Source: Podarcis bocagei
Lineage: Eukaryota
Reading direction: 5' to 3' (one strand)
NCBI GenBank assembly: GCA_964188305.1
Contig: OZ076885.1
Length of the DNA stretch: 64,000 nucleotides
Shown: positions 7,655 through 38,958 of the stretch, one piece after another
How positions within the stretch are numbered: position 1 is the first letter of the stretch
How the letters are laid out: each line of letters begins with the position of its first letter
The notes under the pieces: generated by a model
Databases searched by the model: none
The model's input: the letters and a program-made list of their open reading frames with translations, nothing else
What the model was told of the DNA's origin: nothing
Position numbers and translations under genes: made by a program

Positions 7655-9165
7655 TAATGTTTCAGATCATTTTTTAATTTTGCTTTTCTAATATAAAATA
7701 TGGCATTCATGTAATTCTTTATGTAATTGAGTTTTTGATGCATATTTCTGAAAGTACGTGTATTTGCCAGGGAGTCTAAGAACTCAAAATAAACAGCCCC
7801 AAGCCTCTGCCTTGCATTACAGTTTAAGCATAGCGGCCTAGATTAGCCCTCAACCAGCCTGGTGCCCTCCAGATGTTTTGGACTACCAGCCTCTGTCAGC
7901 CCCAGCCAGCTCAGTTTTGGCTAGGGGTGAGTTGTAGTCCAAAATGTCTAGAAGGCACGAGGTTGGGGAAGGTTGACCTAGATCCAAAGAACAATGCAAC
8001 TAGTTCCTTCCTGCCCAAGGGGAAAGCGAAGAACTCTTTCAAACTGGGGGAAGCTTTGAAAAGCAGTTTGGGATTTGCCATTGGGGTTGTCGCTCTTAGA
8101 AACAACAGTAAAAAAATAATCCCACTGACCGTGCAAAGCCCTTTGGTGAATTTGCGTAACTTTTTGGATCCTGGCTAATGCCCTTAAGTCTGTTTGGAAA
8201 GCAAACTGCCAAGTTGTGGGTTCCTCCTCCTCCTTCTCCTCCTCCTCTCCCTGCTTTTCTTGCATCACCTTCTTAAGCTTTAACTATAGGGATGCCAACC
8301 ATTTGGAAACCAGGGGTTGAAATGGGCAAGCATTAGTCATGGTGAACATTTGTATGGTCATAACGCTTAGCCATGGTTTTTGGCTATTAGCATAAGGGCA
8401 GGGGGGAAGAATTGCACACAACACAAGCTGGGGGGAAGAAGCATGTAATTCTGTGGCCTGCTTTTATTTTCTCAGTTGTACGTCATGATGGGTGGATGGA
8501 GCGCAGAACCCATCCAGTCATATTTTCTACCCCCCCCTCCCAATACCCCTTTCACCTCCCCACACCTCCGCACCATTTCCCATATCACTTCCATCAGCAC
8601 TTGCACCACAATGGCTGCTTCTCTTTTAAAGGAAGAAGTAGCCCTGTTCCTAATTTCCTGTGTAGGAGGAAGACTCGGGATTGTGAGAGACGGAGGGAAA
8701 AGGTGGCCAAGCAAGCAGTCATTTCCTTCCTCATGATACCCTAGGTCAAATTCCAGCCAGGAAGCCAAGGCATTCTAGCCCTGCAGCCTGAGCCTAGAGC
8801 TCTTGCATTGGCTTTTGTCATAGTGCGGGGAGGGGGGTGGGTTGGCTAGCCTGTCGTTGTTTTCAGCAAGCCCTGGGGCATCTCTGTCCCTGTTAGAGAC
8901 TTGCAGCTGGCTTCCTCCAGCCAGCCAGCATGTGCAGGATTATGGGTCATGAATGTGTCATGTTGTTAGGAAGTGTCACGGTTTTGGCAAGCTTTTTTGA
9001 AGTTGGTTTTGTACATCCGACTCATGGCTTCTCTTTCTGAAACTGGGCAGTGTAGCAACCTAGAGCTTGAGCAAATCCACATCCACTGGAGCCCCCCGAG
9101 GGCAAAGAAAAGTGTTTTGCTTTATTATGTTCCAAATGCTTCAAGGTTTCCATTTCACCATTTAG

Positions 9166-9260
9166 CAAACTAAAGGAATCTGAAACAAAAAATCGGGAAC
9201 TCTTGGAAGAAGTTGAAGCTTTAAAGAAGAAGCTGGAGGAGAAATACAGGACAGATGCAG
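9166..9260 (+). CDS. CDC42BPB: MRCK-beta exon (~20)
   Basis: ttag|C AAA..G|gtaatg; [31 protein letters not shown]. Confidence 0.95.
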
Positions 9261-31866: not shown

Positions 31867-32380
31867 GTTAGTGCGTTCGGTCGGGGTGGGACATACAAAG
31901 GAAAAGGGATAAAGAAGAGTGGTTGTAATGTGTTGGTGATGCAGGGAAGGCAAGTAGAGTCTGTGTAAAATTACAGCCATGTGTAAAAAATTACAGAGGC
32001 AGCCATGGGTGGCTAGCCTCCTTCGCCCCAAGGGCCACATTCAGCCTCGGCCTGCCCTCTAGGGGCTGCATGCAGGTAGTGGATGTGGTTAGCCCACACT
32101 CCCCACATGTGTGCATGCAGGGCACAACTCTGTAGATCAGATAAGAGAGAGCTGTAACCCTGCCTCACTCAGCAAAGAGTCCACCTGATGCTTTGTAAAT
32201 TCCTAGGTTCCTCTGCAAAAAGAGCTTAAGGATTCCACAAAGGTCTCCTGCATGAGTCTCCTTCACTGCAGCAGGGCTTGTACAGACCTTCTGCCTAACT
32301 ACCTCAGGGCTGTTCTGTTGTGAGGATATACTAAAGAGGGGAAGAACCCGTATAAACTGCATTATGTCTTGTTATAGCAG

Positions 32381-32498
32381 GAGCTGCCCTTAGCGTGCCG
32401 GAGACATCCGACAACAGCAAGAAGCAAATGCTTCGCACCAGAAGCAAGAGAAGATTTGTCTTTAAAGTCCCCGAAGAAGAAAGAATACAACAAAGAAG
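32381..32498 (+). CDS. CDC42BPB: MRCK-beta exon (~33); NAGNAG acceptor allows start at 32378
   Basis: tatagcag|GA..AG|gtgtga; [40 protein letters not shown]. Confidence 0.94.
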
Positions 32499-32620
32499 GT
32501 GTGACTCTACTATTTCTCTTCTCTCTCACACACACACTCACACACACACACACACCGCAATTGGTGGTAAAGGAGACTCTACTTATGCAAACCCATCATT
32601 TAATGTCTTTGTTGGTTTAG

Positions 32621-32738
32621 GGAGATGCTCCGAGACCCTGAACTCCGATCCAAAATGATTTCCAATCCGACCAATTTCAACCACGTGGCTCATATGGGAC
32701 CAGGAGATGGGATGCAAGTGCTCATGGATCTCCCACTG
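32621..32738 (+). CDS. CDC42BPB: MRCK-beta exon (~34), canonical CRIB
   Basis: tttag|G GAG..CTG|gtaaaa; [39 protein letters not shown]. Confidence 0.97.
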
Positions 32739-33321
32739 GTAAAACTTCTTGTTCCTAGGGAAAGCAGATAGGCAGGCCTATGCTCAGCCACAACCTGCAG
32801 ATCTTGGGAACGAGCTGGCAGAAGAACTTTATAGCTTGAGCAGAGCGGCTGTTCATTTTCTAAGGGGCAGCTGCAAAGTTTAATCAGGGCTAATATACGT
32901 CTTGGAAGGGATCAGGAGGAGGCCTTGGCCATGCCTGCTCTCTCCCCACTTTTCTTCAGCTCGCTTCACTGTAGGGTGATGCAAATGACAGGATAGTTAT
33001 TCAGCTGTAGGATGTCTTCTAACCCTGGGAAATCAAACTCCCTTTTAAAAGGGCTTGTATCTCCTAGGAACCCCCCAGGTCTTTCCATAGTGAGAGGAGC
33101 AAGCATGCAAGCCCAACCCCTGCGACAAATCTTATCCAGGAGGGGAAGGGGAGGGGAGGCAGATGCCTGAGCAGGCTGTGTGAAAACTCTCTTTGAGAAT
33201 GCCAGCACACGCACACGGCACTGAAAGTAAGCAGGCATCACTGCCAAGAGTGCAATAGTGTTTTCTAAATAACTATTCTCTCCTCCTTCCTTTTTCTTGT
33301 TTGTCTTGTCTAAAATAACAG

Positions 33322-33495
33322 AACGAATTTCCTTCCCCTTCACTCTCCCGACATTCTGCTCTGATATCACCTCCAACAGGCTTTGAGCACGTCTATCACA
33401 TGAGCCCTATCTCTGCTGAAATCTTTCTCCAGAGTGACCATTCTTCCTCACTGCTTTCCTCCTCTTCCTGTCCCTCCTCTGCTTCTGTAGCAAGG
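33322..33495 (+). CDS. CDC42BPB: Putative alternative cassette exon encoding a second CRIB motif (58 aa)
   Basis: pyrimidine tract..aacag|AAC..AGG|gtagga, 174 nt, phase 0/0, no stops; NEFPSPSLSRHSALISPPTGFEHVYHMSPISAEIFLQSDHSSSLLSSSSCPSSASVAR contains the CRIB pattern ISxPxxFxHxxH. Confidence 0.85.
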
Positions 33496-34207
33496 GTAGG
33501 AGCAGCTCTTTAGGAACTGGATGGTGACGGTGGGCATTATGCCTCTCTGCCAACATTAAAGAAAAGTTGGGAGGGGGCACTAGCAGTTTGCAGGGTATTA
33601 CTAACCTGTATATATATATATATAAACTAGTGTTTGCTGCTCTGAATCCTACACTTGAGTTAGCAGGTTGTGCTAAACCCCTACACAGACTAGATTATGG
33701 TCCTTCCAACAGCAGGTGGCAAAGGGAAAGCTCACTGGAGAATGCTTTGAAAGCAGTTTTTACTGTTCCAGGTGTCAAATATACCATAGCTCAAAAACAA
33801 TTTTCATATGTTTGTAATTGGAAAAAACCTTGAGGCATGATCTGCAGTCAAACTCCATTCTTTTCTTTACACAGTCTGGTTTACTGGTGAGTTCTGTTAT
33901 CCTGCCTCCAGCACTTGGAAGGAACTTAGACTGATGACTCAGTTTTGTTTCGCTTGCTTTTTGGGAGGCGGGAGGGGGGAAGGAGGGATAAATTGCCCCC
34001 TTGTCAGTTATTTGAATGATGTGCCTTTGTGTTAAATGGCCCTCTTTAGCAAGCGAAGCTTAGTTTGTAAAAAATACCACCATACAATAGCTCTGAAAGC
34101 AGTATTCCTTCGGTGTTTAAAAAAAACTCTGCTAAATGTTTCACTGAAAAAGAAAATAACGTTGAAAGTGTCTTGTCTAATTGACTGTGGCTACATTTCT
34201 GCTGCAG

Positions 34208-34313
34208 AGTGTCTTACCTCCTTCACAAGATGAAAAGGCTTGTCCTCCCACGACCAACATTTCACGCCAAGCACCTCAGAGAAACAAAAGCTACATTTCG
34301 TGGCCATCTTCAG
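34208..34313 (+). CDS. CDC42BPB: MRCK-beta exon (~35)
   Basis: ctgcag|AGT..G|gtaaca; [35 protein letters not shown]. Confidence 0.94.
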
Positions 34314-34397: not shown

Positions 34398-34468
34398 GTG
34401 GCAGTGACCTAGGAGCAGCTATGCCCTTGAGGAGTATGTCTGATCCAGACCAGGAGTTTGACAAAGAG
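34398..34468 (+). CDS. CDC42BPB: MRCK-beta exon (~36)
   Basis: ttacag|GT..GAG|gtgaga; [24 protein letters not shown]. Confidence 0.94.
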
Positions 34469-35270: not shown

Positions 35271-37536
35271 TTTCTAATCAAAGGAAAACAATTTTCCCAG
35301 TGGAGGATGTCTCTGAGACTGAAACCAGGAGCAAACATAGCCATGCACTGGTTTCCTAATTTGTGGGTTCGCACAAATGCTTTCCTTCCATCTCTTGCAA
35401 AATTATTTTTGCAGTTGTATCATAGAATGCTAATACAGCAGTCGCTGGATGGCTGGACCTTTTTAAGAAGCCTGCAGCTTTTAAATCTGTTCTTCTCCTT
35501 CTTCTCCTCCTCCGATACCCTCTAGCGCTGTTAGCAGTGGCAGTGACGAGGCTGTTTTATGAATATGTAGTGATTGTAGCCTCTTGTTAGTGAAGGAGCC
35601 ATTGGGGACTAAAGTAACGGCCAATAGTAAACAAAATTTAAGGTAGTATATTTCTGTGTCAGTTTTCAACTGTAGTCATGAAAGTGCTTTATAGTATTTA
35701 TAAAATGCAGGGTACGCCACAAATGACATGCTCAGAGCAAAACAGACAGGCTGGAGCAGGAGCTGGCATCTTATGTTCCAGTTTGCCCATGGCGGAGGAG
35801 GCAGTCCAGTTGCATCAGGCTCTGAGGGTCATGTTTGCCATCTGCTTCCCTCACCCTCCTATTCCTTCCCACCTGTTCCTTCCATTAATGAAGGCGCTTC
35901 CAGTTTTGAGAGAGGTGGAATAAAAAATACCTTTAAATAAACAATAGTGCCTGGTGGTTGTTGTGGGGGAAAGAAGCATGTGTCGGGAAGGTGCATATGA
36001 AAGGGTGAAAGTGAGCTTCAAAGCATCCACTAAAAACTCCCCAAATATCTGTTGACCCTTGCCACTTTCCTACTGAATACTGCACTAGAGAGAGCCGCAC
36101 TTGTGGAAAGATCCAGCACCCTTTGGGCTGTGGGCTGTCACTGGTGTGTGGTGGTGGTTGTTTTTTAAAATTTCTGCCATCTGCACCTTGGGTCAGCATT
36201 CTGTTGATTTTACCCCATGAGGACTGCAGAAACCACACGGCTGCAGACTCCATCCATGGCGGCCCAAACAAGAGGCGAAGCTTGGCAGGGGCTTGGACTC
36301 GATGGCCCTTGTGGTCTATTCCAGCTCTATGATTCTATGATTCTTGCAGCTGTAGCCCAGCAGGTTGCCATAAGTGTCAGGTTTTGAGGTGGCATTTTCA
36401 GTTTATGCTTACAATAGTTAAGATCAGAGCATGTGAGCTATTGCCTGTATACCAACAGTGCGCTGTGAAACTCGGGGTCATTCTGCTTGGTGGCTCCTTG
36501 CCTTGTCACAGCTCTCCCTTAACAGATCTTGCCTAAATGATTGTCTGAGGTTGCTGTTTACACCCACAGCAAAACCTTGCTGATGGTATCTCTCAGTGAT
36601 ATCGCCTTTTAATCTGTTGGCTAAATATAAAGTCTTCTTCCCCCAATTAAATGGGCTGGCGCAGCAACAGTTCTGCTGTACTTTGCAAAGAGCTAACTGC
36701 ATTCCAAAATGCTGGGAAAATGTCCAAGCAAATGGCTGAAGTGAAAAGGGAAGGGCTACACCACAGAGCCATCAGCAACAAATCTAGAAAATAACGCTGG
36801 CTGGATAGGCGCAATTGACTGTCCAGTGAATTCCTCATTTTGGGCTGCCATTTGTGTCTTCCCTGACACCATTTGCAGTCAGAAACCTTCCGTTTCTTTT
36901 TTTTTTCTTTTTTCTTTTTTTTCTTTCCTTTTTTTCTGTCAAGGACATAACATAAATAACCGGTGGACAAATTCATCTGCTGTTTTACATAACGGTCTTT
37001 GCCCCTGCTTTTCCAAGCTCCTCACTACTCACAACTGAGTGATCCTTTCCCCTATCTGGGGTTTGTGGTGGTGGTGTGTTGCTGTTGTTGCTTTTAATGC
37101 AAAACAGCCATCCAAGGCTGCTGTCAGGAGCAGGAAGAGAGATGGGAGTGGATACACTGCCTTTAATACTGTCCAATCCTGCCCCACTCCTTTCCCACCT
37201 GTAGGGGTGAATGTATGCCCATTATGTTTTCTCCCTGTGGATGAAAGAGGTGCTGCTATGCCCCCCCCCCCCGAGAGAGAGAGAGAGACTAATCCAAGTT
37301 CCCTAACAAGCTGAGGCCCAAATTATATTTGCTGCTTATCACATGCAAGGCTTGGACCCCGAGAGAAGTTCAAGCAACGGAAGGAAGGCTTCTCATCCTC
37401 TCCTCTCCTCTCCAGCAATCTCTGAGCCTTGAGAAGCCTCTCCGGAAGCATCAGGGCACCATCCTGAACAACATGGGATGGAGTTCTGGGGGAAAAAGAG
37501 ACAGGAAACTTTCCTTCCATGAGCTTCCTTAATTTA

Positions 37537-38826: not shown

Positions 38827-38958
38827 CCTGACTCAGATTCTACCAAACACTCGACTCCTTCCAACAGCTCGAACCCAAGCGGGCCCCCAAGTCCCAACTC
38901 CCCACATAGGAATCAGCTGACGCTAGACGGGTTGGACCAGTCGACCTGCGATGCATAA
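38827..38958 (+). CDS. CDC42BPB: MRCK-beta last coding exon (~37) to stop
   Basis: long T tract ttgcag|CCT; [43 protein letters not shown]. Confidence 0.96.

Follow-up and report, generated by a model that had tools for sequence, protein, structure and literature searches.

MRCK kinases link Cdc42/Rac signalling to actomyosin contraction. Those described in the literature that we examined have a single CRIB, and one review remarks that a systematic characterisation of MRCK splicing is lacking. In the window analysed here, a 64-kb stretch of Podarcis bocagei DNA without any N, an initial annotation had placed a second, "hidden" CRIB exon between the canonical CRIB exon of CDC42BPB (MRCK-beta) and the exon that follows it, which raises the question of whether the segment at 33322-33495 is an exon of this gene and, if so, how old it is and what its inclusion would bring to the protein. 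We conclude, with a probability of roughly 0.8, that the segment is a genuine and ancient CDC42BPB exon that encodes a second CRIB core and can be included or skipped in frame, and that it is presumably used as a cassette and predicted to bind a GTPase.

An open, phase-symmetric exon directly 3' of the canonical CRIB exon

The exons of the window match both a teleost protein named MRCK beta-like (RefSeq XP_023665661.1; P0006) and a hypothetical protein of the lizard Phrynosoma platyrhinos (JD844_020660; P0025), identifying the gene as a CDC42BPB orthologue. Reading of the sequence and its translation bore out the presence, between the canonical CRIB exon (CRIB1) and the next exon (N+1), of an exon without internal stops and with the proposed length and phase (CRIB2; Table 1). 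The splice signals named in the initial annotation, a pyrimidine tract, a CAG acceptor and an AGG/gtagga donor (the slash marks the exon border), are all there. The tract, at approximately 33280-33311, is rich in UCUU/CUCU and lies 3' of a branch-point-like TAACTAT near 33270, and as there is no AG in 33259-33319, the CAG acceptor (AG at 33320-33321 after C; context …tctaaaataaCAG/AAC) provides the first AG that follows the tract. The donor, GCAAGG/gtagga, has its GT at 33496-33497. These signals are of moderate quality, with the donor agreeing with the consensus at 6/9 positions and an A-rich spacer preceding the acceptor.

The open frame that passes through the exon spans 33319-33510, bounded by a TAA at 33316-33318 upstream and a TAG at 33511-33513, 15 nt downstream, and these in-frame stops just outside both ends leave an open frame that fits tightly around CRIB2. 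It was fair to say that the open reading frame track misses the exon, as the list contains over it a single 37-aa ATG-initiated frame at 33400-33513 and nothing else. With its 174 nt and its 0/0 phase, CRIB2 can be included or skipped with the reading frame preserved either way; its peptide would be inserted between …MDLPL and SVLPPSQDE…. The position directly 3' of CRIB1 and the symmetric 0/0 phase are those of an MRCK alpha/beta CRIB2-type exon.

Table 1. Features of CDC42BPB in the window around the second CRIB exon
Feature	Position	Strand	Description
Exon N-1	32378-32498	+	5' border approximate (tatag/CA or cag/GA); final Arg codon split by the intron; located by tblastn with P0006 and P0013; 97% identical in aa to L002 8068-8169 of Phrynosoma
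Canonical CRIB exon (CRIB1)	32621-32738	+	Ends …DLPL, phase 0, CTG/gtaaaa; Pfam PBD 23.8 bits; 39/39 aa identical in Phrynosoma
Upstream intron, conserved 3' end	33222-33321	+	Branch-point-like site, pyrimidine tract, AG-free zone; 86% identity to Phrynosoma
CRIB2 exon	33322-33495	+	174 nt, 58 codons, phase 0/0
Donor region of CRIB2 exon	33496-33520	+	gtaggagcag…; AGG/gtagg kept from teleosts to lizards
Exon N+1	34208-34313	+	…ISWPSS; phase 0 start (cag/AGT GTC), phase 1 end; matches P0025 and L003
Exon N+2	34398-34468	+	Sequence read, tblastn
Last coding exon	38827-38958	+	Followed by TAA; tblastn with P0025 and P0006

CRIB2 is the best-conserved segment of the locus between two lizards

Retrieval with the 123-aa open reading frame downstream of CRIB2 returned the Phrynosoma protein JD844_020660 and one Logan contig (L003), which ends short of the CRIB2 exon, and nothing else. 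The corresponding Phrynosoma locus (L002, on CM034701.1) has DMPK_coil, C1, PH_MRCK and CNH domains just upstream, and contains the CRIB2 exon at 8993-9166. According to the initial annotation, stops, frameshifts or lost splice sites in a related lizard would have spoken against the exon; none is present in Phrynosoma, where the frame, the acceptor and the donor (AGG/gtagga) are identical to those of Podarcis, with hardly a change in the 30 nt that precede the acceptor. The two peptides agree at 57/58 residues (L8S). By global alignment the nucleotide identity of CRIB2 is 97.1% (169/174), with an identical run of 136 nt, compared with 92.4% for CRIB1, 94.3% for N+1, 94.5% for N+2 and 89.2% for N-1, making CRIB2 the best-conserved segment of the aligned region. 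Identity in the upstream intron is 86% over the last 100 nt, against 50-65% in its middle.

In GenBank, the Phrynosoma gene is split into a 964-aa model that extends to approximately 8461 of L002 and the 104-aa hypothetical protein JD844_020660, which starts from 10001. Neither model has a recorded PBD match; both CRIB exons are omitted, and CRIB2 falls between the two models. This annotation, the one reptile annotation consulted, is uninformative about the exon.

Several features outside the coding exons were also seen in this comparison. In the intron between CRIB2 and N+1, the stretches 33881-33933 (84% identity) and 34011-34207 (approximately 81%), the latter reaching the N+1 acceptor, are conserved and may be splicing-regulatory sequence. 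The 4.3-kb last intron has a sole block that aligns to Phrynosoma, 36468-36808, with 71% identity to L002 10940-11287; such identity, far below exon level, makes a further cassette exon unlikely. Alignment was poor around a (CA)n-type microsatellite at 32527-32556, in the short intron between N-1 and CRIB1, and around a (TA)n run at 33610-33627, in the intron after CRIB2.

The exon is shared with teleost MRCK-beta and with an MRCK-alpha-type gene

An exhaustive HMMER scan with the 58-aa CRIB2 peptide gave 12 matches among 1.84 billion representatives. One of these, XP_023665661.1, is a RefSeq protein of the teleost Paramormyrops kingsleyae named serine/threonine-protein kinase MRCK beta-like isoform X1, and it splices CRIB1, CRIB2 and N+1 together at the same borders as those of the lizard exons (DLPL/QSES…FEHIYHM…SLGW/TVLPSSQDE). 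It derives from an orthologous or co-orthologous beta gene, with the same neighbouring exons, the same 0/0 phase and an exon peptide that is 62% identical; unlike the lizard exon of 58 codons, its exon has 64, the Ser/Gln-rich tail of the fish being longer, and the protein, of 234 aa, is a partial model computed by Gnomon. Further matches (P0003-5, P0008, P0012 and P0022-24) are open reading frames that were called on genomic contigs of fish and continue through the CRIB2 exon, and a homologue search with region 64-104 of XP_023665661.1 likewise returned fish genomic open reading frames only. No match to the 58-aa peptide was found in a homologue search among proteins of 32-101 aa. Five crustacean-type multi-CRIB proteins (P0001, P0002, P0007, P0009 and P0010) were considered as relatives and rejected, as they have the CRIB core alone in common with the lizard peptide. 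As an observation in their own right, these uncharacterised proteins of 500-1000 aa contain a CRIB core, KDMIGPPTNFQHVxHVG, repeated 4-7 times with Q/E/W-rich spacers in between, an example being Homarus americanus LOC121860995 (XP_042214362.1); we know of no described effector family with arrays of this kind.

The CRIB2 exon is intact in five teleost loci (L001 and L004-L007), with the donor AGG/gtaggc. Over the seven loci available (the window, L002, L001 and L004-L007), the AGG/gtagg donor is always present, an in-frame AG acceptor lies no more than 1-2 codons from the aligned start, exon lengths are multiples of three, and the intron between CRIB1 and CRIB2 measures 457-2621 nt. The position 3' of CRIB1 recurs in L001, L002 and L005-L007, in the spliced XP_023665661.1 and in the frog protein P0011. 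The initial annotation had the exon persisting in squamate MRCK-beta, and this holds for the second lizard but is too narrow, as teleost beta genes have the exon as well. The teleost acceptor shifts by 1-2 codons among loci (cag/AGC in L001, cag/TCG AGC in L005-L007, gag/CGA in L004); it is located within CAG-repeat-like sequence, a setting that suggests NAGNAG-type wobble of the exon start.

The parallel drawn in the initial annotation, an alternatively spliced CRIB2 exon at the same position in the paralogue CDC42BPA, has a counterpart in the bullfrog. The proteins PIO38374 and PIO38372 (P0011 and P0013), which we take to be of the MRCK-alpha type from their presumed alpha C-terminus, carry …DLPM/PRSPYPSPLRHHSSLISTPSNFEHVYHMTVNSAENFL…, an homologous exon placed directly after an exon ending in DLPM, as the lizard exon is after one ending in DLPL. 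Lizard and frog CRIB2 are 64% identical over 33 aa (tblastn), and the similarity extends beyond the motif as had been proposed, with RH..LIS.P..FEH.YHM...SAE.FL and a Ser-rich tail in common. The genes are paralogous, and the exons differ in the residues after YHM (TVN in alpha, SP. in beta) and in their tails; the frog alpha-type tail has no match in the window after CRIB2. The presence of the same type of exon at corresponding positions of the two paralogues indicates that it is older than the alpha/beta split, in agreement with the origin that had been suggested for it.

CRIB2 encodes a complete CRIB core without the canonical glycine

The CRIB core of the exon, ISPPTGFEHVYH, is encoded at 33364-33399 and is followed by SPISAEIFL and then by a Ser-rich tail. 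It matches the pattern IS.P.{2,4}F.H..H in full. Six-frame translation of the window yielded two matches to this pattern, at 32658 (CRIB1) and 33364 (CRIB2), both on the + strand, 700 nt apart and in adjacent exons, and the pattern was found in 0/200 shuffles (0.02 per shuffle for a looser pattern), which excludes chance as its origin. In the protein, the first residue of the CRIB2 core would come 41 residues after that of the CRIB1 core. An alignment (A1) of nine CRIB2 peptides, drawn from the lizards, the teleosts and frog alpha, revealed that the six consensus residues of I-S-x-P-x(2-4)-F-x-H-x-x-H are invariant in 9/9 sequences. Invariance reaches beyond the core, with 17 invariant columns (R10, H11, L14, I15, S16, P18, F21, E22, H23, Y25, H26, M27, A32, L36, S49, P51 and S52), and the peptides have a signature outside it that consists of R-H before L-I-S, FEH.YHM, A..(F/Y)L and a Ser-rich tail with S.PS.

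Against the Pfam PBD profile (PF00786), the CRIB2 exon alone scores 12.6 bits (E 0.18), below the gathering cut-off of 21.3, and the match covers 13 residues at profile positions 2-14 only. In place of V/M-G after the second His, CRIB2 has H-M-S, the Gly being changed to Ser. All nine CRIB2 peptides matched PBD with E <= 1 (best 8e-4), and the language-model neighbours of the CRIB2 peptide are PBD-containing clusters, which we treat as a lead only. As judged from its residues, CRIB2 thus has the complete CRIB core, with neither the canonical glycine nor what normally comes after it. Canonical MRCK CRIB1 shares with it the core I-S-x-P-x-x-F-x-H-x-x-H-M and 61% identity over 18 aa, but scores above the Pfam cut-off, unlike CRIB2 with its FEH.YHMSP.

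A search of PDB chains with the single CRIB2 sequence gave no match, and the A1 profile matched only CRIB peptides of PAK4 (2ov2 chain I and 5upk chain A; E 0.34). The PAK4 core, ISAPSNFEHRVH, agrees with the CRIB2 profile at 9/12 positions, FEH included, although the match is weak and confined to the 12-residue core, and the H-T-G-F-D of PAK4 is absent from CRIB2. From this comparison, the CRIB2 core appears to resemble the group-II PAK type (FEH) most closely, and not the MRCK CRIB1 type (FNH).

The low profile score, with nothing outside the 13-residue core matching, and an H-x-G glycine and following region unlike those of all canonical CRIBs would also fit an exon that is alternative but whose core is a degenerate relic unable to bind Rho-family GTPases. 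The peptide could then serve as a spacer, as a Ser-rich linker under phospho-regulation, or to modulate the C-terminal contact region of CRIB1, which accords with the conserved character of the Ser-rich tail and with an insertion point that lies 11 residues beyond HMGPGDG in CRIB1, where the insertion changes what follows CRIB1. We consider this unlikely, since the invariance of I, S, P, F, H and H in lizards, teleosts and frog alpha over >400 My is hard to explain without the usual function of the motif, and since the core is 9/12 identical to that of a PAK4 CRIB whose complexes with Rac3 and Cdc42 have been solved. CRIB2 may plausibly bind a GTPase, for which the conservation of the contact residues and the similarity to the PAK4 CRIB are indirect support.

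Silent sites of CRIB2 and the adjacent upstream intron are constrained

Between the two lizards, pS is 0.066 in CRIB2 (3/45.3 sites) versus 0.37 in five flanking coding exons (42/113.5; Fisher p = 6.6e-5), so that synonymous divergence is 5-6x lower in CRIB2 than in the flanking exons, while pN is alike in the two (0.016 and 0.010, respectively). The fish loci follow the same trend, with dS of 0-0.43 for CRIB2 versus 0.35-2.2 for CRIB1. The RNA sequence of CRIB2 is under extra constraint at synonymous sites and in the proximal part of the upstream intron. RNA folding of the exon and its flanks gave z = -1.2, with no sign of a structure that would account for the synonymous constraint.

At the protein level, lizard and teleost CRIB2 are 52-67% identical, with dS of approximately 1 (saturated), dN of 0.23-0.37 and dN/dS of 0.19-0.37, and this combination of saturated dS and low dN points to purifying selection on the CRIB2 protein over deep time. 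Among fish, dN/dS is 0.08-0.38 for CRIB2 versus 0-0.1 for CRIB1, in which protein constraint is the tighter.

Conserved alternative exons under regulation usually show low synonymous divergence, and CRIB2 combines the features of a conserved regulated cassette exon: a length divisible by three, a conserved flanking intron and reduced pS. An exon that is real but constitutive in lizards, making a tandem CRIB the default state of MRCK-beta, would agree with splice signals that are reasonable and perfectly conserved between the lizards. We regard such an exon as quite improbable, because the depressed pS relative to the flanking constitutive exons and the conserved upstream intron are marks of a regulated exon, because the fish RefSeq label "isoform X1" implies further isoforms, because the 104-aa Phrynosoma model begins at N+1 without CRIB2, and because in canonical vertebrate MRCK-beta DLPL is followed immediately by the N+1 sequence. 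From the low pS, the conservation of the flanking intron, the isoform label and a canonical protein without the exon, we infer that CRIB2 behaves as a cassette in the lizard. One might speculate that the UCUU/CUCU-rich conserved tract upstream of it mediates PTB-type repression.

That the segment is no exon at all, being instead a conserved non-coding element or a decayed pseudo-exon that is open by chance, is hardly credible: very high nucleotide conservation between the lizards, synonymous sites included, would also fit a regulatory element, but lizard and teleost proteins have remained similar at saturated dS with dN/dS well below one, the frame, the in-frame AG acceptor and the AGG/gtagg donor are kept in 7/7 loci, a RefSeq model splices the exon into an mRNA, and the motif did not arise in 200 shuffles.

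A putative tandem-CRIB isoform of MRCK-beta

Our preferred reading of CRIB2 is that it is a regulated alternative (cassette) exon and not a constitutive one. Its inclusion would add 58 residues, comprising a second CRIB-type core, the conserved SAE-x-F/Y-L stretch and the Ser-rich tail, and the added core is predicted to bind a GTP-loaded GTPase of the Cdc42/Rac family. MRCK dimerises via its coiled coil. A tandem-CRIB isoform would thus present four CRIBs per coiled-coil dimer, which may alter avidity or GTPase preference at membranes. A more far-reaching proposal is that CRIB2 serves as a vertebrate-wide, tissue-regulated switch, possibly neuronal and repressed by PTB, with a PAK4-like site whose preference is unlike that of CRIB1 (e.g. 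for TC10/RhoQ, RhoJ or RhoU/V), that it has been kept in fish and sauropsids and lost or left unannotated in mammalian CDC42BPB, and that its synonymous constraint reflects a dense splicing-regulatory code; taken as a whole, we find this proposal doubtful.

Alternative splicing at the 3' end of MRCK-alpha (CDC42BPA), including a second CRIB region, was reportedly described by Tan, Cheong, Lim and Leung (Gene 2003;304:107), and full-text literature searches for a tandem-CRIB MRCK-beta returned no description. To call the exon hidden was nonetheless an overstatement, as the RefSeq protein XP_023665661.1 is already a spliced tandem-CRIB MRCK-beta-like isoform, and the exon is probably present in some automated annotations. 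The lizard CRIB2 exon is real, old and well constrained, and it is not a new type of element.

The practical value of the finding is modest, in that it corrects and extends reptile gene models such as the GenBank model of Phrynosoma, which misses both CRIB exons. For the MRCK family, the retention of a second-CRIB exon in both alpha and beta for >400 million years, with its silent sites constrained, suggests that there is a regulated isoform which engages membranes or GTPases differently.
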